A model generated the notes under the pieces. That model saw only the letters and a program-made list of their open reading frames with translations, was not told the origin of the DNA and did no database searches. Made by a program: the position numbers and the translations under genes. From Trichoplax adhaerens (taxonomy: Eukaryota > Animalia > Placozoa): a DNA stretch of 32,215 bases. The stretch lies in contig NW_002060955.1 in assembly GCF_000150275.1 (NCBI RefSeq), positions 1,885,503-1,917,717 of the forward strand, in the 5' to 3' direction. Below are positions 4,607 to 29,242 of the stretch, piece after piece (within the stretch, counting starts at the first letter, position 1; each line of letters begins with the position of its first letter).

Positions 4607-5777
4607 TTAAAATGTAAATGTACGCTGAGTATTAGAGCATTCTTTATCGGCGTTAGATTTTTCGTGATGATGATCCAGATCGTCCATATTTTTCTCCAGC
4701 TTTATTTGCTTACGTCTTTTTGTTGTCCTCTTTTTCCTAATTGTGTAGGTTGCACCAGTCGCTGGACGAATAAATAATCCTTTGATTACGGCCGCACTTG
4801 TTAAGGTATACAAGTATGGATTAAGAGCAGAATTTATAGGTAATGCAAATATACCAATAAATTGTAGTGTGATAACGTCAACACCATCACTAGATGCGAA
4901 ACCAGCAAAATTCACGATATAATAAGGTACCCAACTAATTAAATCAGTTATTAATATGATAAATAGACGCAATGCAATCATTTTATCTTTTCTAGCTTTT
5001 GCTTTTCGATTAGTTGCTTGTGTAACAGCTTTACCAGTATCGCGAATGTAGATAAACAATCTAATATAAAGTGAGCATGTAATAATCCAAGCAATAATTG
5101 TAGAAACGATATAGGCTATCATCCAGACTCTGTAGTCAGGGTTCTCATAATTGCTTGGCATACACATACTGTTAAAGGTGTATAATCGTTTGTTACCAGG
5201 CTGATTGATACTAAATAATGACGGTATGAGTGCAAATGTAAATCCTCCTAGCCATATTATACCAATAATCAGCCGAGAATAGAAACGGCTTAACTTTTTT
5301 CCTTCGAGCCCATAAACGATTGTGATGAACCGATCGATGCTGATTACTACCATTAAAAATACAGACACTATGCTAGATGTAGTCATAAGAGTACAAGATA
5401 CTGCACAGAGGGGATGTCGTAGCCACTTCTCAGATCGTATGCCATAAAGGCCTTGATTGCTATAAACCAAATTAGCAAATCCTATGATAAATAAATAGAT
5501 TGACATGATAAAATCTGATATGGCTAAATTATTGATTAAGAATAGGTTGACTTTGTCGGCTTTATTTTTTTTTTTAGCCCGAATAATGCGGAGGTTGCGT
5601 ACAATAACGAAAATGTTACCCAAAAAAGCCAGAATGCCAACAAGCCAGATGAAGAATTGTAATGAAATATGAGCAAGAAGATGCTGACAAGATGATAAAG
5701 TATCAGATATCATCGATGGTTTACAGGATAGTATTTTAGCAGGTATGATGCAACAAAAGTAAGGACGATTGGTTAAT
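4607..5777 (-). CDS. Terminal exon: LGR hinge (LTNRPYFCCIIPAKILSCKPSMISDTLSSCQHLL) + 7TM + basic C-tail
   Basis: The ORF 4607..5713 extends upstream in frame to an AG acceptor at 5778-5779. It has seven hydrophobic helices, DRF at the DRY position, NPYLY (NPxxY) and TM3/ECL2 cysteines. Confidence 0.96.
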
Positions 5778-8700
5778 CTGTTAAGATATTGAAAAGTAAA
5801 ACAAACAGCTTGCTTAACCTCTGAAGTTTAAGCAAATACACCAATTGAAAGTAAGATAGTTGGTTGAATATTGTTACTTTTACTTACATTTCCACTAACT
5901 TAGATGGACCATAAAATGACTCCCGAGATACTTCGCCTAACCAATTCTTTCGTAAATCTCTAATTTTTATAGATTTTAAACATAAATTAAAATTAAAATA
6001 AATGGAAAATATCATAAAAAAAATGTAGAAATATTTTCACAATATGTATACCAACTGCTTTCTAACTCATGTCAATAAAACCTTATATTAAAATCAAATG
6101 AGTATTTATGTTTATTACAAAATACTGTGCGCTATGGTAATCATTCAACTATATCTACGCTGAATCGTTATAAATATTATTTTAACATAGAATGCAAGTA
6201 GCTTAAGATAAAATGGCCTGGCTAATCTTCGCTAGCATGTATAATGAATTCCTATCATAATTTAGAATTTAGTTTTCTCTTTGTGTAAATGTTTTTATCG
6301 AAACGTAATAACGTAATCAATTTGGAATAAAAGCTTTGGCGATGGTAGGATAAGCTCCAAGCTTAACCTTTCTGTTTTTGAGACTCATTTTGTGACGGTA
6401 TCGCTATCTATCTAATACCAATAACTGTATAGAAGGTTCACACTACTCCCATTTGGTATAAGATATAGCGAATTGTACACACATTCATTTAATGTTTGAG
6501 TAAAACCAACTGCTCTTACTCTCCGTATTATTTGAATAATGATCGTGTAAGTGCCTGTACTATTCATAATTGCGGCGTATAATAGTTGTAAGATTGTAGA
6601 ATAGCGAAAAAATCAGTGAACGTAGTACTTTTCATAATTTTCACTCATAATTTAAGAAGTATGATTGAACTTGTATGAAATTTTGTGTATACTTACGTGA
6701 TATAATTTTATTACCAGCATAAATTGTTTGCTACATGATTGTGTAAGTAGTAATTTCTAGTACTTGAGCGTTTGTAGAGTACTAAATTCAGTGCATATCG
6801 AAGTAAAGGAAAATCACACGACGGTATTAAATGTACAGTAGATGCGCGCTAAAACTGACGAATATATGAATATACATTCAAGAATCATGTGCTGTTGAGT
6901 CTAGTTACTACAGTATGTTATACGATAATTAACTAATCAAAATATCTGAATTTATTTGCGTCTTAATATTATAACGTAAATTCGACAGTCCATTCACAAA
7001 TGCAATAAATGTTAAAGCTTCTTTTCGTAATCATAATAATTATTTTATGGTATCATTTGAGCAGCGTCAGTAGCAAAATTAGATTTTAAATTTTCTTTTC
7101 CCGTACTTACAATTTTTGCAAGCTTGATAACCCTCTAAAGCATCTTTCTTGGAGCGTGCTGATCTTATTTCTACTTGCATCGCTTTGTTGTTGATACATG
7201 ATTGCATAAGTTAGTATTGGCAATATTCATTTAAAAAACAAATTGTAAACCAGTAATATTAAGTTCGTTACAAAAAGACTCACATTTCCCTTACATTCGG
7301 AAATAGTTTCGCAATGGCTTGATAGCATAATTCTTCAATTATATTACCGGAGATGTTACTAACGCATGCAAGTATAAATAATGATGGATTTATCGTCGTT
7401 AGTAAACCCTTACCAACATATTACAGTTATATTTTTTCAAAGAAATGAGTCTATTGCAGTGTTCCAGATTTTAAGAATTAAAATCATATCCTAAGTATCC
7501 TACATTTTCATACGATTTTACTGCACGTGTACTTACAGCTTCTTCAAATTTCCATATCGAATGGATAATGAAGAATAGATCTTCTCTAATTTATTATTTG
7601 AGAGACTTCTATAATAAATATCACAATATTGAAAATGGATAAGAAACTATAGGTATATTAGCGTTACAATCAGAATTTTAATCTGTAATTTGCATGCTTC
7701 GCGACACAGAAATTATATACGGTAAAGAGTAAGGCGGATATCTTCCTTCCTTGGTGAATGTTGTATTTATTCTATGATGCGTTATATCTTTGGTATTAAA
7801 CCAATATTATTGGATTTGAGCTAATATCTCGTTTGCATCTTTTCACAATTATGGTATCGTATTGCAGCCATATATAGATGATTTAACATAAAACCGTAAC
7901 ATCAGTGATTATTATAACCCCATAAAGTTGCTATAAAATATTAAACCTAAACATTTCCGTCATGGCAAGGATCCTCTATATGTATTAAAATACTTGAAAT
8001 ATTTTGCATTAATTAATAAAGACTTTAAATTTAATGATCTTACAAATCCGTTAATATGTTTTCATCCTTGTTAGAGATGTCGACCATATCAAATTCACAT
8101 ATGCTGTTGCCGTCCAATGATCTGTCATTAATTAAAGGCTTAAATTAAATGAATATAAAAGTTCGTAATGTATTTTAGGTTTACAGTCACAATTCTAACT
8201 TGAAAGCTGCAGTATTAAAATAATAAACTTACAAAATTCTAAGGGAGTCAAATGCAAACGCTTTTTGGGGAATGGATGAAATATTGCAATTATTTAAATG
8301 GCTATAAAGGACGATAAAATAAGAATAAAAGGTGATCAGTAATTTTCGATGAGAATTCTGTGATTATTAGTCGCAACTGTAATCCTACTGTAATATTCAG
8401 ACAGCTTAATATCTATTTTAAGGCACATCTAGCAGAATTCTATTACTGTAGGTGCTTAACAAAAATCTTTATAAATCTTGTTGAATACAAATTTATTTTC
8501 ATTTTAAAATTATGCTAGAATAAAATAGGTAACTGTTACGGAGCTTGATGCCCCTTGCGTATAACTAGTAGTCAATTTACGATAGTAGAATAACTGTATT
8601 GATATACTGTCGTGTGATTAATAATATTATTAGAGATTGTCGTGTTGTAGACAACAGTCCTTAACTGTTGATTATTATTATTGTTATTTAATTAATCATT

Positions 8701-11700
8701 AATTAATTATGCCGAAGTAGGCAATAGAACTAATGGTGCGATTGCACCATAAATGTGTGATAAATAATTGAACTTGCTAATTAATATTAATTAGTGACAA
8801 GTATTAATTAAAACTCGGTCTAGTCTATAGTAAGCCTGTATCACACATTATATAATTTAACGTGAAAGATTAGCACTGGGGTTATTTGTGTGACGTATGA
8901 AATTGTATATAAGCTTGATTCTTAATTTTGAATCTCAATTCCACTAAGGCTAACATAGAGTACACTGATACTAACGTAAAAGGGCTAGTAATAAATATAT
9001 TTATTAACCTAAACCTATCGTTTGACTCGATTAGTATAGTATAGGAATGAGATAGTTTTCCCTTACTGAGGATCTCGGGAGTTGGTCGGAGAATCATAAG
9101 AGTAGATAGACTAGTTTAGGTACGATCACGAAAGTTGTCTTGTGACAGTAAGAAACAGTCTTCTAATCAAAGGGTAAAAGCTCAAGCATAATTTTGCAAA
9201 CAGAGCTTCCGGTGACTTCAATCTAGTTAAGAGAATTATCATTTAACGTACATTAAAATCTCTTAGTAGTATTACGTTACTGTCAATATTGTAAAGCATA
9301 AATCGTACGATCTTATCAACAAATGTGTACTTTTGAGTGGCGATACATGTTAATATAAGGCACTAATGTACTTAGAAAGTCTCTACATATAAGTTTTTAT
9401 TTAGCCTATTATTAGAAAATTTAGTAGAATTAATGATATTTATGAAATCTAAATTAGGAATAGTAATAACAAAAATAAGATGTTCTTGTAAAAAATTTTT
9501 TTTAATGCCCTGCAGTTTATAGCCTTTAGCGTAACAATGAATAGTTTAAGAAAAGTAATTTTTATTTCTGACTTATACTTACTCTTAGTTCAACTACTTA
9601 CATCCCTACTAGGAATGGTCCAACAAGGTCAGATAAATCTTTCATGAGGGTGTCTAATGTTATTGGATTTTCACTAACATCTCTATACATTCAAGAAAGT
9701 ATGGAAAAATCAAGAGCGCTTTTCAAAGACAGTACATCTTTGTAGATAAATATAGATGATAGAGAATTTATAAGTGAAACTGACCAAATCTTCTATTTTA
9801 AATAAATAATATTATAACGCCTATATTACATGTTTTAAACTATTACAAATATTAGTGTTCGTAGGTTCAAAAGCATATTGACGTACAATTTCAGGTTAGT
9901 TATAGCTGCCATTTCTTTAATATCTGCATTCCATTCATTTCCTGCTAATTTCCTATTAAATAATCATTCAGGCAATTGTAAATTAATTTTCTGTGAATGC
10001 TCTTACTCCAGCCGCGATTATAATATTTGCAAAGGGTTTACTGTTTAATAATAGAATAGACAAGTTTAAAATCTAATTATTATCGTGATATTGTGTTATA
10101 GCTTACAAGTCATTTATTAAGTTCAATTTGTCTAGAAAATCTTTCTTCATATCTATTCCGTTCGCTATCAGTCTCGTGTAGCTCATGTCACTAGTCAGCA
10201 AATGCAAAATAGCTAATTAGTTCCGAAGGTATATTAAATAAAGATTTAAGTGACTTGAATCACAAATTTCAATCAGCAACTTACATTTTTTTAATTTGGA
10301 AGAATAAGCCATCACAGTCAGGATCAAACCTCTTGATATTATTATGCGCTAGTATTCTAAAAGATATGAACAGATATACTGATTAATCTATTTTATACCT
10401 ATTGATTCTAAATTCTTAAAAGTAAATATTTTTAAATAGTTACTAGATGTGGTATTATGCCAAGGAAATATTCGAATGAATGTGCTACTTACAAAGATCT
10501 AAGTACTGGAGGTAATCCTGAGCAAGTTAGATTTGAAATTTTATTTTTTGCCAAATCTCTATCATTAAAATAGACATAAAGAATTAAGAAGAAATTTCTT
10601 ATGAATGGAACGGTGATGTTATGGCATTAAACAGTATATCATGCTATATTTCAAGATTTTTATTGAAAGTATCAACAATTTATAATAAATATTTATAGTT
10701 GGTTTATTGTTATATTAAAATCACGAGTATAAATAGTTAGATAAATATATCAATTATTAACGATAAGATAAAGCTCTAATTATCGACTCTTTCAAGACTA
10801 TTCTTTCTTAGAATGCTAAATTCATCGCTTTCAGCCATAATGTTACCGTTACCGCTAGTATTTGATACAGTGCAACAAGCCATATTTCATAAATCATTTT
10901 TGCAGATGTTTAAATTTATTGAGTTAATTACATTTGAGAATATTTTTGCAAGAATTGCAGTCTGCTAATTAGGTTATTAAAGATTCTATGGATACATATC
11001 TTATACTTACAGTTTTTCAAGAAACGTCAATCCCAAATCATCTTGGACAGACAGTTTTATTTCATTATCGCTTAGATCACTATAGAAGGAAATGCAATCT
11101 AGCTAAGTATCTAAGTGATAAATTATACTATCGATGTACGAAACAATCGCTGTACTGCTTACAGAATTCTTAAATTTCGGTATCTTGAAAACGGTTTATT
11201 TTGCAATGATTCGATTCCATTATTACTCAAATACCTGAAGTTAAATTATTTAAGTTAATATAATAAGATTTTATCACCAAAATTTTCATAAGGTTTCTTA
11301 CAATTGGCTGAGGTAGGGCAATGTGATGTTAAAAATTTCTGTAATTTTTTCAATACGATTGGCATTTAAGTTTCTTGGGTGATAAAAATACCAAGAATCA
11401 GGAATAATTTACGTTAGAATAAGCCTTCCAAGAAGTAAAATCGAAAATTTTTAATTTAGCGAAAAAGATAAAATTGAGTGTAGAGAGCTATGAATTGGGT
11501 AATAAGCTCATCTTACAATATTCGTAGATTTTGTAATCCTTTTAAAATAGGGTTAACGTTCGATATTTGATTATTTTGTAGATATCTATTTTGTATATTC
11601 AACATAAGCGTATTATGAATACTTATATTAAGCAATGAAGAACATTTCGCTGTTAATAATACGTGTATGTCTTACAAGAAAGTTAATTTCGTATTCATAA

Positions 11701-14700
11701 AATAATTTTCACTAAGAGTGCTTATCAAGTTATCATCTAGGTATCTTTAGTAAAGAATTAATAATAATTGTTAGAAGCATGAAATCCATGTAAAAATCTT
11801 TATTATAAACCTGAAACTAGGCTAGCAAGTGAGATAGTTGCGTGTTTGCATAGCGTATTTTACTAATTATTGGTTGAAATCGAACTCAATTCATGACACT
11901 AATATTTAACTGCAATCATCTAAAATCTTGTTCTGCCAATCATTTACTTACAATTCTTCGAGACTTCTTAAGTTCTTAAAGTCGTTAGAATTTACTCTGT
12001 GAATGCGATTAGATGCTAAAGATCTAGATATTAGAAGAAACAATCGTGCATACTCTTATGGAGCAGTAAAATCATTGGTACATTATTTTATGACCTTTAT
12101 CGACGCTAAAATCAAGTTGCAGACAGCCTGATTTCAATATTACTCTTTAAATCTGTTCTGTATGAATTATAGTTAAGAATAGATAATACTCTAGGTAATA
12201 GAAAATTGTTTATCTACTTTGCTATGTGCTTTATAATACTAGCTTGTAGCAATGTTCTAATTCAAATCTTAAAGAATGTATGCTGCTATAGAGACAGGTA
12301 AAGTGCAAGTGAGTCTTATTAATAATAATTACAATTCACGAAAGTAATAAGCATATTGCACTCTCATTTTTAGCTTCGCTTGTACTCATGTGCAAATAAA
12401 GATCTGAAGCTATTTTTGAATTAATTATCTTCAGGTAAATCTTAGCAAAGCTACAACTCCACATATACGCTTGCTAATACGTACGAGATATTTAATAAAA
12501 AGATCTCTGTTTAATCTTGCCATACTTACAGTATAACAAGTTGGGATAGCTTTCCTATAAAATCTAGCTTCTGTAATTTGTTATTTTGCAGAATTCTACA
12601 CAATAAAAATATAACAAGTTATTTGGGACTTTCGAAGCGCAGCCCAGTTGCTATATCAATATTTCGTTGTCAAATCTATAATCAATTAAATAGTTACTCC
12701 GACTCAAGTATTTCTATCGCAAGCACTTTATTAATTCATATTTGCGAGATAAAATAAAGGACGTACTGTATATTAAACTTACAACGACTGTAACTCTGAG
12801 AGCGGTTCTAGTGCCTTCGTATCAATATTAGACAGCATATTGGAAGAGATGTTTCTATGGAATATAAATAGCGATTAGTAAGTATGAAAATTAATAAAGA
12901 CATTTTTGAAATTTCTTATTAAAATAGAGTTTAAATTAGATCACATTCAAGCATTAGGTAAGTTTTTTTTAGCGAACTCATCAGATGGAAATACTTACAA
13001 TGATTGCAGATTACTGTAGTTAGACATAATAAAAGAATCTTTAACACTTTTGATGTTACTATAACGATTGCTTGTTAGATCACTGGTAGGAAATAAAGCA
13101 TCGAAATTGTTTAGAAAAATAAAGAGAGATGATAAGGTTAAAGTTGAATTGAACTAATTATATTTGTACGAGTTAAATATATTAATTTCAGGAGAATTCA
13201 TAAATTTACACTTACAGGTGGGCTAAATTCAAAAGTGTAGAAAAATTGAGCGGTTTTGATTCATGGAATTTATTGTAAGATAGATTACTATTTCATACCA
13301 AGTTTACAGAAGATTATATGATATTGATATTTGATATTCATATTGATATGATGTTGATATAGTTGGCACATAAATGATAAAAAATTGATCAGACTTACGA
13401 TATTGACTATAAACTTGATAATTCACAATCACTTGAATAGCAATTGAAATCTAGAGCACATGGACTTACAGGGTTCTGCAATCTGCAAAGTCTAAATATC
13501 GTATTTCTGATATGTAGTTATTCGTCAAATCTCTGTTAGAAAAAACAGTAACTTAAAACTTCGAAATCAGCAGATAGCAGATTATTCAGAAATATTGGAG
13601 TATTATAGAATTTTATATAGCCCTAAAAATTTAAGTTTTAATTATAGTAGGTACTTATTGTCTTATCCTTGCCACAGGTATTACGTATAAATTGAGATGT
13701 GATATAGATGAACTGACTATTATACTACTGATATTTATTTGCTGATTTAATTGATATTTGATATTGGAGCTTTGACTGCCTCCATATTATACTCAGAATA
13801 TATTTAAGACTTACAAAGTCTTTATGACCGGAGAATTTCTACTTCTTTCTACTGATCCATTGTGTACGTTCAGTCTTAGCGGATATGATCTTGATAGTCC
13901 CCTTAGTAGATAAAAACAATCTTAATAATAGCCATAGGACTTAAGATTGAAATCTATAGAGCATTACTATATTACTTAGCGTAAGAAAATTATGCAATAT
14001 ACAAGTTTGATAAGATTTAATTATAGAAAACAATTGCAGCATACAAAAATTCCATTGATGCAACATTAGGTAATTGAAATTCTGGAAAATTTCTGATGGG
14101 ATTGCCACTAAGTTGCCTAATAAGTTTACATTATTAATAAATTACATTGCTTGATAGTTATACGTTTATCCATAGCTCGAGCCCTTATCCAAAATAATAC
14201 TGCATGTAAAAATATCAATAGATTTCATTTGAACAGTTCTTAAATGGAATCTAGCTCGGGCACTTATTTTAAAAAGGTATAAAAGGCTATTGCACTCACA
14301 GTAATTGTAGTTTATTTAGGCCTGTAAATGTATTTTCGTCAATATGCGATATTGCATTTGTTTGCAAACGTCTAAAGGTGTAAATGTATGAAAAATTAGC
14401 ATATACCAATAGCATTAATACTATTTGGAACATCTTGTAGTTAGTTATAGAATGTTGGCAGTATGCAAGGAGTATAAAAAATTAAAAATTTAAACTATAA
14501 AATTTAGATTATTGCTGTTCTTTGATCTAGAGTTAAAGTAGTTGCAAGAATTTATGTAAGATTTTATCCCTTTCGATCTGTAAGCGGTATAGTGTTATAT
14601 ATACATATGTCAAAAATTTTAATTCTGCACAGCTTGCAATTAAATTGCGAGTTATTATACGAATGATCACTAAATAATAGCACTAGCTTGAAAGTTTAAG

Positions 14701-17700: not shown

Positions 17701-20700
17701 TAAGTACTTCAGAATATAGTATTTTAATAAATAAATGCTTTAGCAAACAATGAAAAGAAAAATTACCGTACATTAATACTATATTTAAAATTCTAAAAGA
17801 CCTCCCCAAATTTTCATACATCATTTTTAAATCATTTACTCACAGAAACACGAGATTCTTTAATTTAGTAAAGGAACCATTTTCAATTATTCTAATTTTG
17901 TTATCTGCTAGTTCTCTAATTTAGAAATTTTATTATTACGATAAAAAGCTATATAATATTAAATATTGTAGAACAATATCAATTAATTATTATTGAAATG
18001 CTTATACATAGCCAAGGCAAACCAAAAAACTAGTACCGTAATTTATAATTAATATGATAAAATTATGAGCTAAAGTCAATGCAGAAATTAAGGTAGAGAA
18101 CTAATTATTTCCAGTTTATGGATTTAAATATTTTAATTCACCACATACAGCAGATAGAGGTTATCAAGATTGACAAAATAGCTTGGTTTTATGATCGAAA
18201 GACTATTATCGGTAAGGAATCTATTAGAAAATAACAATTTTTTGTCATTTACATTAAAGCAGATATTGCACATTCGTTACTGTTCACCAGGGTGAATGCC
18301 TTGGTAATTTGTAACGTTGTAGGATATATAATATCTAACATTTTTATTATCTTCGCAATAGTTATCAGTCTTATCTACTGTAAATGATCGTTATCTTGCA
18401 AGAATTGTAGCAGATAGCTAAGAATTTATTTAACTAATAAAACGTCTAGCATTAATCTCCATGACTGCTAGTATTTGAATTTATAGAAGCTAACATTGTT
18501 AGAGACAAATTTAAGTTATGAAACCATCATAAAGTGTTATATCGTATTTTACACTTAATAGGCATACAATTTGGCCAATTTATTGGTGGGCTTGAAAGTG
18601 TCCTCATCGATGTTAGTAATTTGATTTGATATAACGGATCTGACAATAAATATAATTGAAATATAGAATAATGTCTAATTATAATGTAATTTTTTAATAA
18701 TCAACGGTTAAAGTGCTGTTACATAGCTAGCGATGGTAATAACTACAAGACTAGCAACGAATTGGAGTTACATCTGAATGAATTAGATATCGTATCGTAA
18801 AAAGATTTGATTACCAACACGTAAAGATTCAGTAATATATCTAAGAAAGCATTTAATTTGGTACATACAATAATGTTCTTTGCACAACTGATTAGTGCAG
18901 TCATAAGAAAATAATGTTGTTAAATACATTGCAATACATTACTTTAACGTTGAAAAATCTTATCGTCTCGATATTGTGAATTGGTATTGATAAGACAGAA
19001 ATATACAAAAATTGAACATACTGTAACGTTCATCGCTAAATCACGTTCTTACAATTCTGTCAATCGAGAAAGGCATGCAAGGCTGCCATTGGACAATTTC
19101 GGTAATTTATTGTCATTCAAATCTCTAGAGAAAAATAATTCGGAGTTATAATTTTATAAATGAAAATGATTAGCTATATGGTAAATTTTGAATAAAAATT
19201 TTAAGCCTGAATTTATGTGGTATTGTAAAAAGTTGACTAGCGACGAATTTATAGTAGCTTTTTTGTTGGATGTGGTCTCTAAAAATAAGCTCATTTTGCA
19301 CGTAAATGTTACTCTGTATTTGTTACTATGTACTCGTGCTATATACGTGCCACAATTTCACTTCTGCAACAAGGTAACGTACAGTAAAAGTCTAAAAGTA
19401 GCTACTGACTTAAACGCCCGTTTACTTAATTTAACATACACAGAAGAAGACTCTAAAAATGAAACTTTCATTAGCAAAGATACATCTACAACTTGTTACC
19501 ACACTACTCAACTCAAATGTTCCCATTTATGTAGGAACAGTCTAATTTGTAAACAACAACAGTATTATTATTATACCTTACCAGGAGAAACATCTCGAAC
19601 TGAGATGTTCCTTACATAGCTTTTTTATAACAATCAATATCAAATATGTAATGAACTATTACAAACAACATCCACGTTAAGGCATTACTTGTCTTACCTA
19701 GCGCTACAAAAATGGATATTCTCCGTACTAGCTACTACTGTACTTATTAAACTATCCTAATGACAAGGCAACACGGTAACAATACGGTGAAAAAGATTCT
19801 AAGGAAGTATCGAAAGTAATCGAAAGTTTAAAACGTTGCGTATAAAGAAATTAATATTGTTTGTATAGAACGCGATTTCGACAGTATTTTAAATCCAACC
19901 GAAGGTGTTCTGGAAGTAATCTATCAGAATTCACTAGAATTTCTTACTAATTTATTTTGGATTTCAAATGGAATGTCGCATTCTAAATTAATTATTCATA
20001 GCTATCATCGATAGCATGAAATCTAAGAAATTCTTTAAGCAATTCTCTCATAAGTTCTTGAATCTAATTTAACTTACAATTTTTCCAAATAAGGCATTGA
20101 GCAGAATGTTTCAATTTCGATAAATTCAATGTCGTTATTGTGTATACTTCTAATGAAATAGAATAGATGTATCAAGTTTATTTTGCCTAAAAACAGGGAC
20201 TAAAGTTGAATTATACTAATTTTACGGGAAGGCTAATTAAATATTTAAATGATATAGAATTCGCTATTAATAAATTTTGAACCAAACTTGAGCTGAATTA
20301 TGGTAGTCAATAATGATATCATTCATAAATTAGATTTAGATGTAAAGGAGGTAATAATTATTTAGAAAACTACAAATAGCCGAAATATGGGGTTTTAATA
20401 CAGCAGTCTTTTTCAGTAATAATCACTTGATATCAAAGATACAGCTCTAAGAATGCACTACCAATGAAATATGAATAAGAAAATATTCTTAAACTAATTC
20501 TATCAAGTAAATATTGTGCAAAGAAATCAGTTTCATCATGTATTAAATATATTGATAATTATCGAACTAACTATTATAGAATGCAATATCTTACATATTT
20601 CTCAAATTGGAAGTACAGGCAAAGGTATACCGTTCAAGTTTTTTAATTTTGTTTTGGAAAAGCTGACTAAAATTATATAAAAGTAACAAATAAGTAAGCA

Positions 20701-23700
20701 GCCATATTATCAGTATTCTATAAGTATATACCAAGTTAAGTAAAAATAAAGTAGCTTTAATGAAGAATAATACTTACAGCTCCCATACTTTAGGCATTCC
20801 ACAAAATGAATACGGTTCTACATAGGTGATTGAATTCTGTTCTAATTTTCTAAAGCATCAAAAAAAATTCAGTTTGCTAAAAATGGCGTATATGCTGTTA
20901 CATTGTTTAAAGTAATTCGCCGAATCATTAAAGGATTACAAAGCAAACAAATAAATGTAAATATGTGCTATGTAACTATTTTTTTTTCGTTTTAGAAGTG
21001 AGTAAATTATGATCGAAGAGATAACATGTTTAACAGTTTCAATGAATAGTTGTAAACATCGTAGAGCAGCAATATCAATGGCAAACTTTTAAAGCTCAAA
21101 AAAATGTGCTAACAATGGATTTGTTAAATGAATATAGGCTATAATTAATTAGAGCACTTTTATTGGCCTACTATAGTGGATAAATATAGATTATTTCTTG
21201 TCTTAGCTTGATATCTAATTTTGATTTCTTACGTTGAATGAGCGCTTATGTAATACACTAAGTATTCTTACTGATTTTTTGCGAATATAGTCACAATATT
21301 CTAAAATTGCGTCTGATAAATAGCTACTATTGCAATTGATTTTATTTAAAAATTCATATGCTTACAAATGTTCTACTGATGGTAAGCCAACGAATGCAGA
21401 ACGGCGTACGATTTTCAGATGATTTCCTGCGATATCACTAATTAGAAATGAAGGTTTAAAAATAGCTTATATACAATAATTTATCGAGAACTCGTTATGA
21501 TTTACGTCAGAATTAAATAAAGTTTTTGACTTTTAAATGGTAGTTGCAATTTTAAGTTATCTGAGTATAAATTAATGAATCATACAATCTATAGTATGAA
21601 CTTTAGGCGATGTAAGATGCATAACGCCTACTGTCAACGATGCAATAAAACAAGGGTAAAATTGAGGCATTTTAAACTTACAGCATGCGAAGTTTAGTCA
21701 GATTTCGGAAAGAATTAGGCTCAATGTCTTCGATTACATTATATTCAAGGTATCTAAAAATTTAGAAAAGTATCTCGTTTACTATACATGAGCTCATTTA
21801 AAAAAATGGAGTCTGACAATTACTAGTCATAACAAAATCTTTAGTCTGCAAATTATCCAATTAATATAAAATTATCATTTCTTTACAATGTCTGTAATAT
21901 CTTATTTTATACAAACATGTCTTCCAATGATGACAGACAAGCCAAACTTTCGTTTTTAACAACTTTTAGGCGATTGCCCTTCAAATTTCTGTATAATATA
22001 TTTATAGATAGGGAAAAGAATTCCGTTATGCGTTAATCAAGTTTTGCTTGTATGCGTCTAGTATAGTACAAGTCTCTAGATAGCATCATAAATAGTTATT
22101 GATATTGATGACTAAACAAATATTACAACTAAATTTATTGATTATAATTAAAGTTATTATTTGTTCATGTGGCAATAATTAATACTTTAATTTCATATAT
22201 CGATACTTACAGACGAACAAGTGATTCTAAACCGCACAAGGAGTTAGTTTCAATTGTAGATATTGCATTATGTTTCAGTCGTCTGAAAAGTTAATAAAAG
22301 AAGGATAACAGATCAGCTTTAGAGCATAATACAACCTAATTTGTTGATAGGTTAACGGAGACTTAAGTGTACTAGCGTAATTACTGATTTATTCTATCGG
22401 ATATATAGTTTTATTTTGAGTCAAATGGATTTAAAATCATTTAATATCTACTTTAACAATGATACGCAATCCAGGTACAGCTTTATAACATATGTAACTA
22501 AAACACCACAAATTGATTGCAGTGATTGTTAGTAAAATAGTAATTAACTGTAACATCATTTACAAACTTACAAACTTTCCAGATTTAATAGACAACCAAA
22601 ATCGCCCTCAGACATGGTTTTAAGGCGATTATTGTCCAGAATTCTAATCAATCGTTATTTTATTAAAACCAGAGTGTAAACAGTAATAAAAGTGATTGTT
22701 ATAATATAGTTTCTTATTAGCGAATGATAGTGTAAAATAGTATGTTACACTTACAAATGTTGTAAATTTTGCAGCATACAAAAAGCTTTGGGTTGAATGT
22801 GTGTCAATGCATTTGATCGAAGTGTCCTACGAGAATGGAACATACTGATATTTACTGGCGGTTAGCATATTAAATTTGATATTCGAGCTTAGGTCAAGAT
22901 AGTGGCTACAAGATTTTTCCTATTTTTTAAGTATATTTTGGTTATGAGATTAGTATACTTTATTTATTGTGCATTTAAGAGTTTTATAGCAAATTGTGCA
23001 ATTATGAAGACCATATTAACCGATTAGAAGCAAATCAATCCGATTGGGATTTTGCTGTAATAATCGGCGATAGACGACATATTGTTATCAAATTTTTTAT
23101 AGAATACGAAAAGATTGAATTTATTTTAAGGCACTGATAAATAATGTTAGAAAAATATTCCCTAACTAGGTTTCAATGAAATCATTAAAGTTGTTTCATT
23201 TTTAAATAAAATTTTTTTTATTGTATTTATTATGCAAATTTAAATTATAGCAATAAATTGTTTAATAACTCGTACATCTTCGTCGAATATAATTTTTGAG
23301 ATTCTGCTATTCTGACATTACAATCATTTATAATCCCGTAGATATAGGAATAGAACGAGCTTTGTAAAATTAACGTAGTGTGTCACAAAACAGCTTTGTA
23401 ACAAGATAACGTAATGTACGATCAATAAGCATTTATATGCTCTTCCTCAATAGTTCATGAATCATAGTTAGTACGATTAACTTATAAAATCATTTACTGA
23501 ATTAGAAATTAATTTTAGCTACTACTCCCTTAATGCAGACAACAGTATTTACCTACATAGACATCTGATGACTAATACAGAATAGTCAGATTACCATATG
23601 TTCTATCACGGAACATTTTCACGATAATTTACAATCTACCATAAGTAAGTTACAATCACAATAATTCGAACCGTAAGTAGATGATTTACATTCCCTATTA

Positions 23701-26700
23701 TAACTATTAATTCAGTATGTATATATGTGTCTCTGTCATAAAAAGTCAGAGCTATATTAAAATACAGTATATCTAAATTAGAATTTAAGTAAATAAGGAT
23801 AGGCTAACAGAATTATCCTAACCTAGATGTTTCTACTCTAATAAAGTATATAACACTGTCACAGAGTGACTTACAGTTGCTTTAGACTTTTTAGGCAATT
23901 AAAAGATCCACTTTCAATAACTTGCAATCGGTTAGCTTCTAAAGACCTTTTGACAGAGAACATGATGGTATAATAGAAGTTATTGTTACCGTTTTTCATT
24001 AGTAACCTCCAAAAATCGAAAACCTTACAAATTGGTTAGATGTGATAATCCACAGAATGCATCAGTTTCAATGACTTCAATGAGGCTGCTAGTAATGTTC
24101 CTGAGACGCAATTAAAGTTAAGGGTGGCATTGTAAGACTTTCTTTGCTTAATATCTGTTATGTAAGTAGCAGAAATAAACTATAATTCTTGAATTGTAAT
24201 CTATCATTTTATAATTTGATAATGAAAGTAATCAATTCATTACATCTATGCCTTTCTGCTTCTATGATTCAAGATTTGCATTCACCTGTTATTTATTGTC
24301 AGTACAATATATATTTACTGTAGATGTTGCGACTCGAGTTTTGATTATTTGAAACGGTGATAAAATCTTTACTCCGATATACGTTGCCGTACTGTTATAA
24401 AGGCGAGTTACTGGTATTTGCTATTATTTGCACTAAAGTAATATCCTACGACCAATCAATAAATTCAATCCCGCAAACTGGATCAGAGAAAGGTTCTATT
24501 AAAATAGATTTACCTTGCAGTTAAAATACCATTACTACTCTATTTGTGAGATAAGTCATTTTACACGTATTGGCTAGCGCTGAAATTGGTGGTAATAATA
24601 TGTTTCTCATGCTGTAGTACACTTAGTAATATTTGCTATTGTTATGAGCTAGATACTGCTTAGAATGTCGTAAATTTCTTCATATTTCGGCATTTTGCAA
24701 ATTGACTAGGCATTTCGCGAATTGACTAGGCATTTCGTGAATTGACTAGGCATTTCGCGAATTGACTGGATTTCGTACTTGGACGGTAACAATATTGTAG
24801 AGATCATTCATGTTATTTAAGATCCAATACGTCACGGAGCAGTAAGACTTATGATAGTGTTTGTAAATAAGATAGGATTATATTTTCGAAATAAATAACA
24901 TCGATAGATCTAATATGCTACTAAGTATACTAGATGTTGATTGTGTGAGTCATCTAGCCAAATTAGTATTGATTAATTTGATATTTTTTCTGAAACGTAC
25001 TCTTTTTGAACCTGCATTCATCAATTTAAATGAGTAAACTTGAAAATAGAAATTTTTGGTGAGGACGTAACTTCATGTAATTACTGCCTTGTGTTTGTTA
25101 AGTTAAAAAATAAATACACTGCCATATTTAACGTTAGGTTTCGATTGTGAGTAATGAGCACAAACTTCTAAATAATTTTGGCATAAACTACCATGAAATG
25201 CTCATTTAACGTTTTGACTGAAAGCATATTGGCGTAAATAAACGATTCAAGAAATTCCATTCAAAAAACATTTCCGTATCTTATATCAAAGTTTGATGAA
25301 TAGAATTCTGCCCTTTCAAAAAGAAGAATATGTTCTTACAGTTTAACATTGTTGATTAATTTAAAAAATAATCATTTATGACAGCATCTTAGGCAGATCC
25401 TATTACTGCAGCCTAGCTGATTCTTTAGGAACTAATCAGCGACGCAAACTACTCTGTGTGCTTCTAATAAAGTTACAAGATACTAATGAATTCTCTTGGC
25501 CTCTTTACGATGCAACGGTATGGGTAAAGAAGGCCATAGTGGTCTAAAACCTCCTTCTATCTTAAAACTTGGCGATAAGGTGTCACGGTACCTTTTTGCC
25601 GTGATGAGTTAGAAGTGTTATGGTGTTTGTTATAGATAGAAATTGAAGTATTATGGTGTTTGTTATTGATGGAAATTGATGTTTTATGATGTTTGTTAGT
25701 AAGGTGTTTTGATGATCAACTCTCCTTAGTTATTTTGTATGTATTCGAATAGGAGGATAGACTAGATAAATATAAATCTTGATGATGTGCAACCTTTGTG
25801 TTAGAGAGTTGTTTATGCTGACACGATTTGTAGTCGTGTTGTAAGATTATTACTGGATAGGAGGTTATGGTTGTGAGATCTCCTACGTGAGATTAATGTA
25901 AATAGTAAATATCTTAGAAATTATATAAAGGCTAACTATGATGCCATGTGGACGAGGAGAAAGGCATAGAAAAGAATAAACTGTAGTGATAGTTATCTGT
26001 TCAAAAGCCTACGCTCAACNNNNNNNNNNNNNNNNNNNNNNNNNNNNNNNNNNNNNNNNNNNNNNNNNNTTGTGTTGTTGATTATCCTATGTGAAGAAAG
26101 CTAAGCTATTAGGGTTAATAGGATGATCGATGGCACAAACTTCATTTAATGCTATATTTGAAGAACATGCGAATTGTAACAATGACGAGAAATATCGGAT
26201 GTATGGTTGAAATAAGTATTTAACAGTAGGTCTAGTGATGAAAATTTTACATCATTTCTCTTACGAATCTTAAAGATTTTCTAATATTCTTGAAAAAAAC
26301 TAGCGACTTTAATTATCACTTCATATAATGTAAAGTAGGTAAGCATTTTGGTGCTAGTTGATAACATTCTGGTAGATCGCATACTACTGGCTAACGTGAC
26401 TACTACTGCAGACTTCTGCACCAGCTACAGTAATATTGAACTTTCTTCTTTACAAACGAGTAGCATGGCAATAAACATATGCATCGATCGATGAACTAGT
26501 AGACAATTTTTGATTGCATATAATTATTAGAATTCTATTTTCTAGAGTATGTTTTGATCGTGCTAAAATACTGTCATCAGTAAATTGACGTTAGACATTG
26601 AGCAATCAAAAAACGGAAATTATTTGTTGGTGTAATACTAACAGTGAAGTCACATATCTAACGTCCGTGTAATTAATGTTGGGCAATTCAATTAAGTCAC

Positions 26701-26943
26701 TACTGGAGCAATTGATAGACAAAGTGCTGCAGTTACAAAAGCTTGGACAGCCGCTGCTTGTTTCTGTAGAGAAGGTAACAAATTTCTTAGGTTATTTAGC
26801 AAGTAAAATAAATAAATAGAATTGTAGCACTTGCTATCGATTACTATACCAGTAATTTCACAGCGACAAGTTACTAAAAGCCAAATAAAGGCTATAAAGT
26901 GGATACAAAGGATCCAATGTTTTAGATTGCTGTTGCTTTTCAT
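4607..26943 (-). CDS. Giant leucine-rich-repeat G protein-coupled receptor (LGR; RXFP/GRL101-like hinge and 7TM), 51 coding exons, ~1618 aa: signal peptide + LRRNT + 48 LRRs + hinge + rhodopsin-class 7TM
   Basis: Manual splicing with GT..AG boundaries. Exon lengths sum to 94+121+3471+1171=4857 nt with no in-frame stop. Nearly every internal exon encodes xLxxNxIxxLxxxxFxxLxxLxxL. The terminal exon has YFCC..C.P...DTLSSCQHLL, NLAISD, SIDRF, WVPYY and PINSALNPYLY. Confidence 0.92.
5888..5959 (-). CDS. LRR exon 48 DLRKNWLGEVSRESFYGPSKLVEI
   Basis: 72 bp, AG/GTAAGT. Confidence 0.9.
7111..7182 (-). CDS. LRR exon 47 DASRNKISTLQERCFRGLSSLQKL
   Basis: 72 bp, AG/GTAAGT. Confidence 0.9.
7284..7358 (-). 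CDS. LRR exon 46 NISGNIIEELCYQAIAKLFPNVREI
   Basis: 75 bp, AG/GTGAGT. Confidence 0.9.
7537..7608 (-). CDS. LRR exon 45 SLSNNKLEKIYSSLSIRYGNLKKL
   Basis: 72 bp, AG/GTAAGT. Confidence 0.9.
8044..8121 (-). CDS. LRR exon 44 SLDGNSICEFDMVDISNKDENILTDL
   Basis: 78 bp, AG/GTAAG. Confidence 0.88.
8233..8301 (-). CDS. LRR exon 43 HLNNCNISSIPQKAFAFDSLRIL
   Basis: 69 bp, AG/GTAAGT. Confidence 0.9.
9602..9682 (-). CDS. LRR exon 42 DVSENPITLDTLMKDLSDLVGPFLVGI
   Basis: 81 bp, AG/GTAAGT. Confidence 0.82.
9887..9952 (-). CDS. LRR exon 41 KLAGNEWNADIKEMAAITNLKL
   Basis: 66 bp, AG/GTACGT. Confidence 0.82.
10107..10190 (-). CDS. LRR exon 40 DMSYTRLIANGIDMKKDFLDKLNLINDL
   Basis: 84 bp, AG/GTAAG. Confidence 0.82.
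10285..10356 (-). CDS. LRR exon 39 ILAHNNIKRFDPDCDGLFFQIKKI
   Basis: 72 bp, AG/GTAAGT. Confidence 0.9.
10493..10558 (-). CDS. LRR exon 38 DLAKNKISNLTCSGLPPVLRSL
   Basis: 66 bp, AG/GTAAGT. Confidence 0.9.
11011..11079 (-). CDS. LRR exon 37 DLSDNEIKLSVQDDLGLTFLEKL
   Basis: 69 bp, AG/GTAAGT. Confidence 0.9.
11163..11234 (-). CDS. LRR exon 36 YLSNNGIESLQNKPFSRYRNLRIL
   Basis: 72 bp, AG/GTAAG. Confidence 0.9.
11302..11373 (-). CDS. LRR exon 35 NLNANRIEKITEIFNITLPYLSQL
   Basis: 72 bp, AG/GTAAG. Confidence 0.88.
11517..11585 (-). CDS. LRR exon 34 YLQNNQISNVNPILKGLQNLRIL
   Basis: 69 bp, AG/GTAAG. Confidence 0.9.
11676..11744 (-). CDS. LRR exon 33 YLDDNLISTLSENYFMNTKLTFL
   Basis: 69 bp, AG/GTAAG. 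Confidence 0.9.
11952..12023 (-). CDS. LRR exon 32 SLASNRIHRVNSNDFKNLRSLEEL
   Basis: 72 bp, AG/GTAAGT. Confidence 0.9.
12530..12595 (-). CDS. LRR exon 31 ILQNNKLQKLDFIGKLSQLVIL
   Basis: 66 bp, AG/GTAAGT. Confidence 0.9.
12783..12854 (-). CDS. LRR exon 30 NISSNMLSNIDTKALEPLSELQSL
   Basis: 72 bp, AG/GTAAGT. Confidence 0.9.
12999..13082 (-). CDS. LRR exon 29 DLTSNRYSNIKSVKDSFIMSNYSNLQSL
   Basis: 84 bp, AG/GTAAGT. Confidence 0.88.
13216..13287 (-). CDS. LRR exon 28 NLSYNKFHESKPLNFSTLLNLAHL
   Basis: 72 bp, AG/GTAAGT. Confidence 0.9.
13470..13532 (-). CDS. LRR exon 27 DLTNNYISEIRYLDFADCRTL
   Basis: 63 bp, AG/GTAAGT. Confidence 0.85.
13815..13901 (-). CDS. Atypical LRR exon 26 GLSRSYPLRLNVHNGSVERSRNSPVIKTL
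   Basis: 87 bp, AG/GTAAGT, open in phase 2-2 but degenerate LRR consensus. Confidence 0.7.
14045..14116 (-). CDS. LRR exon 25 QLSGNPIRNFPEFQLPNVASMEFL
   Basis: 72 bp, AG/GTATG. Confidence 0.88.
14300..14371 (-). CDS. LRR exon 24 RLQTNAISHIDENTFTGLNKLQLL
   Basis: 72 bp, AG/GTGAGT. Confidence 0.9.
15016..15087 (-). CDS. LRR exon 23 NLNENEIPRLNAGQFKHLINLKAL
   Basis: 72 bp, AG/GTAAG. Confidence 0.9.
15171..15242 (-). CDS. LRR exon 22 DLTDNKLKRFSSTIFSPLVNLQDL
   Basis: 72 bp, AG/GTAAGT. Confidence 0.9.
15562..15633 (-). CDS. LRR exon 21 RLAFNSISSINDTAFEDLYNLTTL
   Basis: 72 bp, AG/GTAAGT. Confidence 0.9.
15816..15887 (-). CDS. LRR exon 20 TIINVRLNSLDAYQFSGLISLRHL
   Basis: 72 bp, AG/GTAAT. Confidence 0.85.
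16152..16223 (-). CDS. LRR exon 19 VMNNNNISNLPTKLFKSMKVTLTL
   Basis: 72 bp, AG/GTAAGT. Confidence 0.88.
16447..16518 (-). CDS. LRR exon 18 YLNSNNIDSVAPTTFQNLTSIEIL
   Basis: 72 bp, AG/GTACGT. Confidence 0.9.
16616..16684 (-). CDS. LRR exon 17 RLDRNNLSHVHPQTLCAPSLLRV
   Basis: 69 bp, AG/GTAAG. Confidence 0.88.
17228..17299 (-). CDS. LRR exon 16 RASLNKLVSIEDGTFCDFRHLETL
   Basis: 72 bp, AG/GTAAGT. Confidence 0.9.
17562..17633 (-). CDS. LRR exon 15 SLSGNDLTHIQRDHVNGLTNLQEL
   Basis: 72 bp, AG/GTAAGT; equals the C-terminal end of ORF 17558..17824. Confidence 0.9.
17844..17915 (-). CDS. LRR exon 14 ELADNKIRIIENGSFTKLKNLVFL
   Basis: 72 bp, AG/GTGAGT. Confidence 0.9.
18568..18639 (-). CDS. LRR exon 13 SVISNQITNIDEDTFKPTNKLAKL
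   Basis: 72 bp, AG/GTATG. Confidence 0.88.
19053..19124 (-). CDS. LRR exon 12 DLNDNKLPKLSNGSLACLSRLTEL
   Basis: 72 bp, AG/GTAAG. Confidence 0.9.
20078..20149 (-). CDS. LRR exon 11 SIHNNDIEFIEIETFCSMPYLEKL
   Basis: 72 bp, AG/GTAAGT. Confidence 0.9.
20595..20666 (-). CDS. LRR exon 10 QLFQNKIKKLERYTFACTSNLRNI
   Basis: 72 bp, AG/GTAAG. Confidence 0.9.
20778..20849 (-). CDS. LRR exon 9 KLEQNSITYVEPYSFCGMPKVWEL
   Basis: 72 bp, AG/GTAAGT. Confidence 0.9.
21366..21437 (-). CDS. LRR exon 8 DIAGNHLKIVRRSAFVGLPSVEHL
   Basis: 72 bp, AG/GTAAG. Confidence 0.9.
21682..21753 (-). CDS. LRR exon 7 YLEYNVIEDIEPNSFRNLTKLRML
   Basis: 72 bp, AG/GTAAGT. Confidence 0.9.
21917..21988 (-). CDS. LRR exon 6 NLKGNRLKVVKNESLACLSSLEDI
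   Basis: 72 bp, AG acceptor, weak GTTTGT donor. Confidence 0.85.
22211..22282 (-). CDS. LRR exon 5 RLKHNAISTIETNSLCGLESLVRL
   Basis: 72 bp, AG/GTAAGT. Confidence 0.9.
22572..22643 (-). CDS. LRR exon 4 ILDNNRLKTMSEGDFGCLLNLESL
   Basis: 72 bp, AG/GTAAGT. Confidence 0.9.
22755..22826 (-). CDS. LRR exon 3 TLRSNALTHIQPKAFCMLQNLQHL
   Basis: 72 bp, AG/GTAAGT. Confidence 0.9.
23380..23863 (-). repeat. Dispersed repeat copy B, in the intron after LRR exon 2
   Basis: Reverse-complement homology to 171-620 with a different internal insertion. Confidence 0.88.
23875..23946 (-). CDS. LRR exon 2 SLEANRLQVIESGSFNCLKSLKQL
   Basis: 72 bp, AG/GTAAGT. Confidence 0.9.
24029..24100 (-). CDS. LRR exon 1 NITSSLIEVIETDAFCGLSHLTNL
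   Basis: 72 bp, AG/GTAAG, phase 2-2. Confidence 0.9.
24689..24768 (+). repeat. 20-bp tandem repeat (GGCATTTCGCGAATTGACTA) x4
   Basis: Directly visible near-identical units without spacers. Confidence 0.92.
25612..25697 (+). repeat. 33-bp minisatellite (gaagtgttatggtgtttgttatagatagaaatt) x~2.6
   Basis: Directly visible diverged tandem units. Confidence 0.8.
26020..26069. other. Assembly gap (50 N) in the intron between the LRRNT exon and LRR exon 1
   Basis: Run of n characters. Confidence 0.99.
26643..26763 (-). CDS. Coding exon 2: LRR N-terminal cap ETSSGCPSFCNCSTLSINCSSSDLIELPNINYTDVRYVTSL
   Basis: CPxxCxC...C....L..LP LRRNT motif; ctctacAG acceptor; phase 1 in, phase 2 out (GTTAGT), matching both neighbours. 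Confidence 0.9.
26850..26943 (-). CDS. Coding exon 1: signal peptide MKSNSNLKHWILCIHFIAFIWLLVTCRCEIT
   Basis: ATG at 26943, basic n-region, hydrophobic h-region, phase-1 GTATAG donor. A polypyrimidine tract and AG acceptor at 27002-27003 imply the exon starts at 27001. Confidence 0.85.
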
Positions 26944-27059
26944 GTCCGATATTAATGATGCCAATGATTAATTTTTATAATGTAATTAAAAGAATGTCAA
27001 CCTAATCAAAAAGATTAAGAAGAAGAAGGTTTACAAATTTAAGAAAGCATCTTTGAAAG

Positions 27060-27320
27060 TATTTTAACAAGAAAGAGAAAGCAACCTCATCGCTATAGTG
27101 TTAAAGTTGATTACTTAAAATTTGTGGGTGTTCTTTTGAGCTGTCATTTAGCTACCGCATATTAATTAATTTACCTCACCGTAGTCAAAAGGATTAAGTT
27201 GAAGCTTCATGAATTAAAATTAAACATTTAGTAATATTTTTACAAGAAAGGCTAAGCAATCTCATGGCTATAGTGTTTAAGTTGAATGCTAAAACTTATA
27301 GTTATTCTTGTAAGTTGTCA
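27060..27320 (+). repeat. Diverged ~87-bp direct duplication (27060-27146 and 27235-27320)
   Basis: tatttt.acaagaaag...aagcaa.ctcat.gctatagtgtt.aagttga...ttctt...ag.tgtca occurs twice. Confidence 0.8.
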
Positions 27321-27649
27321 CCGCGGATATGGAGCCCATGATTTGGTAATGTTTTCGGATTAGTTAATCGCAAATAATTTGATTATCACTTTTCTCAGTT
27401 GATTTTAGTAGATATTCCTTACGTCTGCTAATTATGTCATCTTCCCACGACAAGCTTAATTTTGCGTTACATTCAGAGTAGGACTATTGTCATTCCTTGT
27501 GGATATGAAATGATCAAGGAGCTTTTTTGTCACGGTATGAACCACCGTGAAGAGTAAATGACTAAATTTAGTGTTTAACATTTATACATGGAAATAAATA
27601 GAAATGACTTACAGTAAGAACTACAGTAGTTATTATTTAGTTACAGTAA

Positions 27650-28450: not shown

Positions 28451-28602
28451 GTTAATCTTTGTATAAGATTCAATAAAGCCCTTAATTTTCTGAAATTTGG
28501 AATCTCGTGATTGGTATATATCATAATGATGTAACGTAGAAGCAAAGGTGTCTAAATTCTTTTGAGGTAGTTAAGGGATACTGAATCTCAGAGACTATAG
28601 TA

Positions 28603-28630
28603 ATTTAGAGATTTAGAGATTTAGAGATTT
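28603..28630 (+). repeat. (ATTTAGAG)x3.5 microsatellite
   Basis: Directly visible. Confidence 0.85.
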
Positions 28631-29242
28631 GTTTTACGTATATATCGAAGAAAATACAATTCGAAATTAGGTAATAATCAAGTGTGAATACACTACTGTA
28701 AATAAATGGATAAAAGCTCCTATAGTAACTGTATTTATACAGGTGGTCTTAAGCCAATTAAATTTTTTGTTGTATCTTCTAGACATGCAGGCAGCTTATT
28801 CTGGTGTAGTAATGTTAATATCTGCGGTAATATCAAATATAGTCAAGTCCGAAATGAAATGATTGATAAGTAATAAAATTCGCAGCTAAAAAACGCTTAT
28901 AACTTCTAGTCTTCAAAAGGCTTATTACATCGAATAAAATGGGCAGTGAAATCAGAAGACTTCCAAAGAGATCTGTCTCGCGAGTTAAACTTCAATTTGT
29001 ATTGCTTAGATTAATCTATGAACACGTTCAAGCTTAGAATATGCAGTTAATATTGCATTTTACTATTGGTTAACCATGCCTATAGTAAGAACTACACGTT
29101 TAAGTTTCGGATATACTTGAACAAAACGCTATTTCGAACCAGTTTGATTCGAGGAAGAAAACGTTCTTCTTTGCGTCACTTAAAGTATTCTAACTTTATG
29201 AACTTATATTGAGAAATATAAAAAATTATAAGCTAGACTTAC

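Follow-up and report, generated by a model that had tools for sequence, protein, structure and literature searches.

The window analysed here, a stretch of 32,215 nt that forms the terminal part of a 1,917,717-nt scaffold of Trichoplax adhaerens, harbours a large receptor-like gene, referred to as gene A, and part of a downstream tandem paralogue. The window is AT-rich (~30% GC) and contains a single run of N's (26020-26069), and all gene signal was found on the minus strand. The coding sequence of gene A runs on this strand from an ATG at 26943 to a stop codon at 4607-4609. Its visible model comprises 52 exons, encoding a predicted signal peptide, an LRRNT cap, an array of 49 LRR exons, and a hinge together with a 7TM domain. 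Upstream of the ATG, in window positions 27000-32215, no convincing gene was detected, with three ORFs of 73-94 aa only and no LRR signal. Over its final 1.2 kb, the scaffold shows a sharp turn of the GC skew to negative values.

Exon chain and assembly gap

The exons of gene A were searched by scanning for open segments bounded by AG...GT and chaining these in frame. An independent rebuild gave a visible coding sequence of 4929 nt, corresponding to 1642 aa, with no internal stops. All 51 introns possess GT-AG ends; intron 1 is in phase 1 and introns 2-51 are in phase 2. The median intron length is 204 nt, and the longer introns include those of 2542, 1300, 1151, 1048, and 953 nt, while those at the irregular exons 28-30 measure only 143-282 nt. 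The introns were searched for additional signal-peptide or LRRNT exons and for exons in another phase, and none turned up. Most LRR exons are 72 nt long (34 of the 49), followed by lengths of 69 nt (five exons), 66 nt (three), and 84 nt (two), and by single exons of 63, 75, 78, 81, and 87 nt. The 72-nt exons read xLxxNxIxxIxxxxFxxLxxLxx, all in the same phase, and end in TT or CT, so that the junction codon encodes Leu. On the minus strand, a half-anchored PSSM detector recovered 42 of the 49 LRR exons; on the plus strand it recovered nothing, which excludes chance.

Exon 1 (26850-26943) carries the ATG and the predicted signal peptide MKSNSNLKHWILCIHFIAFIWLLVTCRC..., and ends at the donor GTATAG in phase 1. 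It has a 58% identical counterpart in paralogue C, which like paralogue B is located in the 70 kb left of the window, and a 90% identical copy on contig NOWV01000377.1 of Trichoplax sp. H2. Intron 1, of 86 nt, separates the signal-peptide exon from exon 2 (26643-26763), which encodes the LRRNT cysteine cap CPSFCNCSTLSINC and the start of the first LRR. The cap motif CPxxCxCx6C follows a hydrophobic, signal-like N-terminus and is 67% identical in paralogue C; its Pfam LRRNT match (E 2.4e-5, 24.3 bits) falls slightly below the cut-off of 25.8 bits.

Exons 3-28 (14045-24100) form a phase-2 chain of 26 exons, twenty-five of 72 nt and one of 69 nt, with intact one-to-one counterparts in paralogues B and C. 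Exons 3-8 are located at 24100-24029, 23946-23875, 22826-22755, 22643-22572, 22282-22211, and 21988-21917, and exons 9-14 at 21753-21682, 21437-21366, 20849-20778, 20666-20595, 20149-20078, and 19124-19053. They are followed by exons 15-20 (18639-18568, 18220-18149, 17915-17844, 17633-17562, 17299-17228, 16684-16616) and exons 21-28 (16518-16447, 16223-16152, 15887-15816, 15633-15562, 15242-15171, 15087-15016, 14371-14300, 14116-14045). Exon 29 (13815-13901) encodes the irregular repeat GLSRSYPLRLNVHNGSVERSRNSPVIKT. The residues GLSR are common to gene A and paralogues B and C, with synonymous changes, and to the H2 protein RDD37223.1, which reads ...FLGLSRSYPL... across exons 28/29. This coding conservation fixes the acceptor at 13901 and the exon length at 87 nt, and replaces the boundary given earlier in the reading made from the sequence alone (the sequence-only reading).

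The chain continues with exons 30-36 (11676-13532), located at 13532-13470, 13287-13216, 13082-12999, 12854-12783, 12595-12530, 12023-11952, and 11744-11676. These exons have counterparts in paralogue B, and in paralogue C with the exception of exon 32. Exons 37-51 span 5888-11585 and are based on RNA contigs, with 2-4 runs per junction. Exons 37-44 lie at 11585-11517, 11373-11302, 11234-11163, 11079-11011, 10558-10493, 10356-10285, 10190-10107, and 9952-9887, and exons 45-51 at 9682-9602, 8301-8233, 8121-8044, 7608-7537, 7358-7284, 7182-7111, and 5959-5888. Exon 52 (4607-5777), joined to exon 51 by the RNA junction 5888/5777, encodes the four-cysteine hinge NRPYFCCIIPAKILSCKPSMISDTLSSC, the 7TM domain (Pfam 7tm_1), the C-terminal tail, and the stop. 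The rhodopsin-family 7TM domain corresponds to a 406-codon open frame at 4610-5827.

A further LRR exon is cut by the assembly gap. Its first 17 nt (26070-26086), a G followed by the codons for IINNT, are preceded by the acceptor cacatAG, with the AG dinucleotide at 26087-26088, and read GATAATCAACAACACAA before running into the N's. The residues IINNT are in the phase of all other repeats. The gap consists of fifty N's (26020-26069), covering the remaining ~55 nt and the donor of this exon. At the same place, paralogue B possesses a complete 72-nt LRR exon IINNTSIRRIRARSFIYYPELVV followed by GTAAGT, its flanking intron being 95% identical, and paralogue C likewise possesses a complete 72-nt LRR exon IINNTSIRKIKARSFINYPELVI (IINNTSIR...). 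The intron between the LRRNT and IINNT exons measures 556 nt here and 554 nt in the H2 contig copy. These counterparts indicate that the array most likely has 50 LRR exons, the 50th being partly hidden by the gap, and that the protein has ~1666 aa. The gap-cut exon is a phase-2 cassette of 72 nt, so that its absence leaves the reading frame intact, and the visible model therefore reads through the gap. The long intron that separates exon 3 from the gap-cut exon carries two short tandem arrays (24689-24775 and 25612-25698; a 20-mer repeated 4.4 times and a 33-mer repeated 2.6 times).

The rebuilt chain agrees with the sequence-only reading in that separate LRR exons are joined in frame between a signal-peptide/LRRNT pair and a hinge+7TM exon, and the ends given in that reading, 4607 and 26943, match the stop and the ATG exactly. 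The one-LRR-per-exon array thus stands, with 49 visible and most likely 50 exons in place of the 48 counted then. Likewise, the length of ~1618 aa proposed at that time is superseded by 1642 aa for the visible model and ~1666 aa including the gap-cut exon, and the gap is not merely intronic, as it takes in the part of an LRR exon described above.

Paralogue cluster and selection

Gene A lies in a cluster with at least three paralogues. Paralogue B is inverted (plus strand of the scaffold, locus 1840274-1863531); its LRR exons occupy 1840724-1862250, and its 7TM follows at 1862361. At 95% nucleotide identity, it possesses counterparts of exons 3-44 and 46-52, that is, 48 of the 49 LRR exons and the 7TM; the position of exon 45 falls in assembly gaps. 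Every readable splice site in paralogue B is AG/GT and no stops were found. Paralogue B lacks the signal-peptide and LRRNT exons through a deletion of ~2.5 kb, at whose joint the homologue of window 28700-28986 abuts the homologue of window 26219. Its public model XP_002116061.1 (336 aa) corresponds to the 7TM alone. TRIADDRAFT_30238 (336 aa), considered as the public model of gene A, was rejected as it corresponds to the 7TM of paralogue B, and a search for contigs encoding TRIADDRAFT_30238 found none.

Between genes A and B, the LRR exons are 94.7% and the introns 92.7% identical, with dN 0.044, dS 0.088, and dN/dS 0.50. When the 173 A/B differences were placed at random, a mean of 8.6 stops arose, and none of 5000 trials was free of stops. 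In addition, all 188 splice-site bases are kept between A and B (P ~6e-7 at intron-level divergence). The dN/dS of 0.5 against this young copy corresponds to only weak constraint. No hypervariability of the concave face was seen between A and B, the differences being spread over the repeat without enrichment at the beta-strand x positions, and there is thus no sign of diversifying selection on the binding face.

Paralogue C is encoded on the minus strand of the scaffold, with its signal-peptide exon at 1837014 and its LRRNT exon at 1836827. It shares 61% amino acid identity with gene A (66% in the 7TM). Its array matches that of gene A in exon order, with all irregular exons included: 48 of the 49 LRR exons have a counterpart there, and so has the gap-cut exon. 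Over 3093 aligned nt, A and C differ with dN 0.277, dS 1.18, and dN/dS 0.235, and the least variable repeat positions are the structural N5, I7, F15, L18, and L21. Since paralogue C keeps everything from signal peptide to 7TM at this dN/dS, the array has been kept as a unit under purifying selection. The A/C duplication is old enough for silent-site saturation. Protein P0153 was considered as an orthologue of paralogue C and rejected.

Paralogue D is a downstream tandem copy on the minus strand of the window (711-3492), with seven visible LRR exons, such as those at 3492-3421, 3174-3103, 1632-1561, 1251-1180, 959-879, and 782-711. No signal-peptide or LRRNT exon was found between paralogue D and the stop of gene A, and paralogue D looks headless. 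A run of 17,377 N's (scaffold 1868126-1885502), which represents a huge gap or else sequence that is withheld, adjoins the left edge of the window and covers the 3' part of paralogue D, including its 7TM, which is present on the H2 contig NOWV01000377.1 at ~14.6-16.4 kb.

Transcripts, public models and alternative readings

RNA contigs of four runs from two studies (X11-X14) were compared with window 5650-11649 (6 kb). All 15 predicted junctions from exon 37 to the 7TM exon were seen in these contigs, all with CT..AC ends, and coincide exactly with the model: 5777/5888, 5959/7111, 7182/7284, 7358/7537, and 7608/8044; 8121/8233, 8301/9602, 9682/9887, 9952/10107, and 10190/10285; and 10356/10493, 10558/11011, 11079/11163, 11234/11302, and 11373/11517. 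The transcripts therefore join the 16 exons nearest to and including the 7TM as predicted. Neither of the observations that would have counted against the sequence-only reading, transcripts from separate genes or exons never spliced in, was made among exons 37-52, where 15 of 15 joints are consecutive. The RNA joints also settle the ambiguous acceptors of exons 43 and 45, and show splicing across two long introns (1151 and 1300 nt) that were possible sites of a second promoter.

Beyond exon 37, the loose ends of contigs in runs X13 and X14 agree with the beginning of exon 36. Of the 1434 nt of one X13 contig, 1048 nt lie upstream of exon 37; thirty of these match exon 36, and the contig, if collinear, would reach about exon 22. 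When words sampled from 4607-14600 were sought in 21 runs, three true RNA-seq runs contained a share of 0.15-0.28 of them; the exonic share of this stretch is ~0.29 by our own count. From the frame, the splice sites, and the conservation, we infer that exons 1-35 would be part of the mRNA.

RNA contigs also fall in introns 45 and 50, where they were considered as hidden exons and rejected. Intron 45 (1300 nt) contains a dispersed, non-coding repeat of ~550 bp (8600-9150) with at least 40 copies in the genome at 75-94% identity, which is present in RNA contigs with loose ends and is probably a small non-autonomous mobile element. This repeat explains both the length of intron 45 and the RNA contigs there. 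For the contigs in intron 50, matches were confined to paralogous introns, and these contigs resemble unspliced RNA.

The public model of gene A is XP_002116142.1/EDV21542.1, an 'expressed hypothetical protein' of 599 aa, which corresponds to residues 1044-1642 of the final model with 100% identity. It starts at an internal Met in exon 43, has no signal peptide, and holds LRR exons 43-51 and the 7TM. No public protein of 561-1785 aa covers the array, and the gene was aptly described as hidden, its public model being only a fragment. The nearest proteins are all of Trichoplax origin (T. adhaerens or Trichoplax sp. H2). The matches of the array that rank behind the Trichoplax fragments are insect artichoke/Chaoptin, at 26%. 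The H2 orthologue RDD36462.1 (842 aa) is a chimera of the 7TM of gene A and paralogue D, with two 7tm_1 domains; this fusion model lies on NOWV01000377.1 at 8313-16414, and the H2 contig ends inside the array. A further H2 paralogue, RDD37223.1 (1020 aa; 60% identity), is collinear with exons 24-52, and this collinearity extends through the irregular exons 28-30. At 22769-25150, NOWV01000377.1 also carries a 157-aa model with 90-93% identical signal-peptide, LRRNT, and IINNT exons, which by this content is the head of another cluster member.

Each LRR exon is a multiple of 3 nt with flanking introns in phase 2, so that skips keep the frame, and a single gene could in principle use its LRR cassettes combinatorially, the common proteins having far fewer than 50 repeats. 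We regard this as very unlikely. Only joints of consecutive exons, and no exon-skipping joints, were found among the contig joints of the four runs over 6 kb (window 5650-11649); as such contigs drop rare variants and give no isoform proportions, this is compatible with minor skipping. Furthermore, the exons are individually conserved in paralogue C (dN/dS 0.24), and one repeat per phase-2 exon is the ordinary structure of LGR genes, being found in those of types A and B.

It is highly improbable that the locus holds two transcription units, one for a secreted LRR-only protein and one for a shorter LGR starting inside the array. The public models do start internally, XP_002116142.1 in exon 43 and RDD37223.1 at the equivalent of exon 24; however, these N-termini are internal Met or artificial starts without signal peptide. 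Exons 1-35 lie beyond the stretch covered by RNA contigs and include introns of 2542, 1048, and 953 nt. Nevertheless, no intron harbours a second signal-peptide/LRRNT exon or an exon out of phase, and the introns at the irregular exons 28-30 are among the short ones (143-282 nt). Both long introns within the RNA stretch are spliced through, one of them being lengthened by the dispersed repeat, and the 1434-nt RNA contig extends 1048 nt upstream of exon 37. Moreover, signal peptide, LRRNT, the entire array, and the 7TM are all retained in paralogue C, in unchanged order.

It is hardly credible that gene A, as a member of a cluster with fast turnover, is decaying or has lost its function and yields no working receptor: the cluster is dynamic (paralogue B with its signal-peptide and LRRNT exons deleted, paralogue D apparently headless), the A/B dN/dS is 0.5, and one exon of gene A is unreadable through the gap, but the 4929-nt frame is open with 51 intact introns, the gene is transcribed and correctly spliced in four runs of two studies (window 5650-11649), the motifs DRF, WVP, and NPYLY are intact, and a predicted signal peptide and LRRNT are present.

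The best explanation is thus one transcribed gene for a signal peptide, LRRNT, ~50 one-per-exon LRRs, a hinge, and an LGR-clade 7TM GPCR, to which we assign a probability of roughly 0.85. The proposal of a single LGR-type gene with an LRR ectodomain of record size is supported by the RNA joints and by paralogues B and C.

Receptor class, ectodomain and biological meaning

Exon 52 matches Pfam 7tm_1 with E 6.9e-29 and encodes seven hydrophobic segments with the motifs DRF, WVP, and NPYLY. The best PDB sequence match of the 7TM is RXFP1 (6e-38), followed by TSHR, LHCGR, and FSHR, and all ten PDB sequence matches at E<1e-10 are LGRs (RXFP1, TSHR, LHCGR, FSHR, and the C. elegans LGR 8w1z). A comparison of 12 family members showed all four Cys of the hinge, and two Pro, to be invariant. 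As in LGRs, the LRR array and the 7TM are located on one polypeptide, RNA joining exons 37-51 to the 7TM; the 7TM is of the rhodopsin type and groups with LGRs, and the hinge contains cysteines. The product is predicted to be an orphan GPCR of the hormone-receptor type. An LDLa module, as in type C and GRL101, was not detected, since the signal-peptide exon directly precedes the LRRNT exon with no Cys-rich LDLa-like exon, and Pfam found no LDLa in three family members.

In the genome assembly (105.6 Mb, 1414 contigs), the 7TM has 75 matches at E<=1e-20, and it is 42-66% identical to other Trichoplax members. A re-annotation of T. adhaerens (PMC9545775, 2022) described 46 LGRs, of which 41 are placozoan-specific (Tadh-LGR6 to -46). 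These 41 have a hinge type of their own and LRRs in 'unusually high number', with 34 in Tadh-LGR15, and were placed as a group outside types A, B, and C. Gene A resembles these receptors in species, many LRRs, short Cys hinge, LGR-clade 7TM, and tandem clusters. It is a Trichoplax gene with its own hinge, a high LRR number, and closest 7TMs from Trichoplax, and by these features belongs to the placozoan-specific LGR expansion. It differs in its ~50 repeats, compared with 'as much as 34' in PMC9545775, where the genes carry TriadITZ identifiers. The suggestion of an unusual LGR subfamily therefore holds in that the group is placozoan-specific and rich in LRRs, but the group is not new, having been described in 2022 (PMC9545775). 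Gene A is an under-annotated member of a class already known from the literature, and what it adds concerns size, completeness, and gene structure rather than a new kind of receptor.

Among other known systems, RXFP1/2 (type C) and GRL101 are similar in the 7TM, whose best structure match is RXFP1, the hinge of gene A being short, and the H2 orthologues were automatically named 'GRL101-like'. However, gene A lacks LDLa, has ~50 LRRs where these receptors have ~10, and shares ~30% identity with them. LGR4-6 (type B) and the glycoprotein-hormone receptors (type A) share the predicted arrangement of LRRNT, LRR solenoid, hinge, and 7TM, and full-length LGR4 is the best fold match of the model of RDD37223.1 (3e-26). 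In contrast to the ~50 repeats of gene A, LGR4-6 have 17 LRRs and the glycoprotein-hormone receptors 9-11, and their hinges are different and longer. Insect Chaoptin/artichoke (~40 LRRs) and TLR7-9 (26 LRRs), the next-best matches, are similar in their long arrays of 24-residue LRRs, but are GPI-anchored or single-pass TIR proteins, not 7TM proteins, and apart from the repeat itself show no specific homology.

The shape of the ectodomain was approached through the AlphaFold model of RDD37223.1, the 60% identical paralogue, which has a mean pLDDT of 72.6. In this model, beta-strands recur regularly, once per ~24 residues and at pLDDT 80-95. Over residues 95-191, which are equivalent to exons 28-31, the confidence breaks down, and in the part equivalent to exon 45 the repeat pattern gives way to a helix. 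After LGR4, the fold matches of the model in the PDB are TSHR, FSHR, and LHCGR, and then TLR7-9. Irregular repeats (exons 28-30 and 43-47) interrupt the array, which probably is not one uniform arc. The model hints weakly at an ectodomain made up of two or three pieces of solenoid instead of an uninterrupted coil, and two arcs, one of the shapes offered by the sequence-only reading, would be weakly favoured. From the general geometry of LRRs, a solenoid of 50 repeats would be too long for a single flat horseshoe.

Cysteine pairs in neighbouring exons alternate between repeat positions 16 and 17 in exons 3/4, 5/6, 7/8, 11/12, and 13/14, and further pairs were found in exons 19/20, 41/42, 46/47, and 49/50. 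The pairs in exons 3-14 are kept in paralogue C, and in paralogue B with the exception of exon 4. Such pairs are compatible with putative inter-repeat disulfides on the convex side.

Gene A would encode a type-I-oriented GPCR with ~50 typical 24-residue LRRs, each in its own phase-2 exon. By analogy with other LGRs, the concave face of the solenoid may bind an extracellular protein or other macromolecular ligand, and the hinge/7TM may relay this binding to G proteins. Placozoans lack true TLRs and possess C-type-lectin scavenger domains fused to GPCRs (PMC6321704), which makes a recognition role for LRR-GPCRs conceivable, although speculative. The suggestion of the sequence-only reading that the receptor may sense large or polymeric ligands is speculative as well. 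The giant placozoan LGRs might then be pattern- or surface-recognition receptors rather than hormone receptors and fill the role of the absent TLRs; their TLR-like solenoids, which would make more than one turn or form two arcs, would act through G-protein or arrestin signalling. We consider this reading, drawn by analogy, as unlikely.

For the annotation of T. adhaerens, the finding means that the 599-aa public model represents about a third of a receptor of ~1666 aa. With ~49-50 LRRs in at least three clustered paralogues, placozoan LGRs go beyond the 34 LRRs that had been reported as their maximum. An array of ~50 LRRs is about three times that of LGR4-6 and nearly twice that of TLR7-9, and as an ectodomain of this length would exceed a single flat horseshoe, the receptors are good subjects for structural work on long LRR solenoids. 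The finding also bears on the use of dozens of oversized orphan LGRs in an animal without neurons or TLRs.
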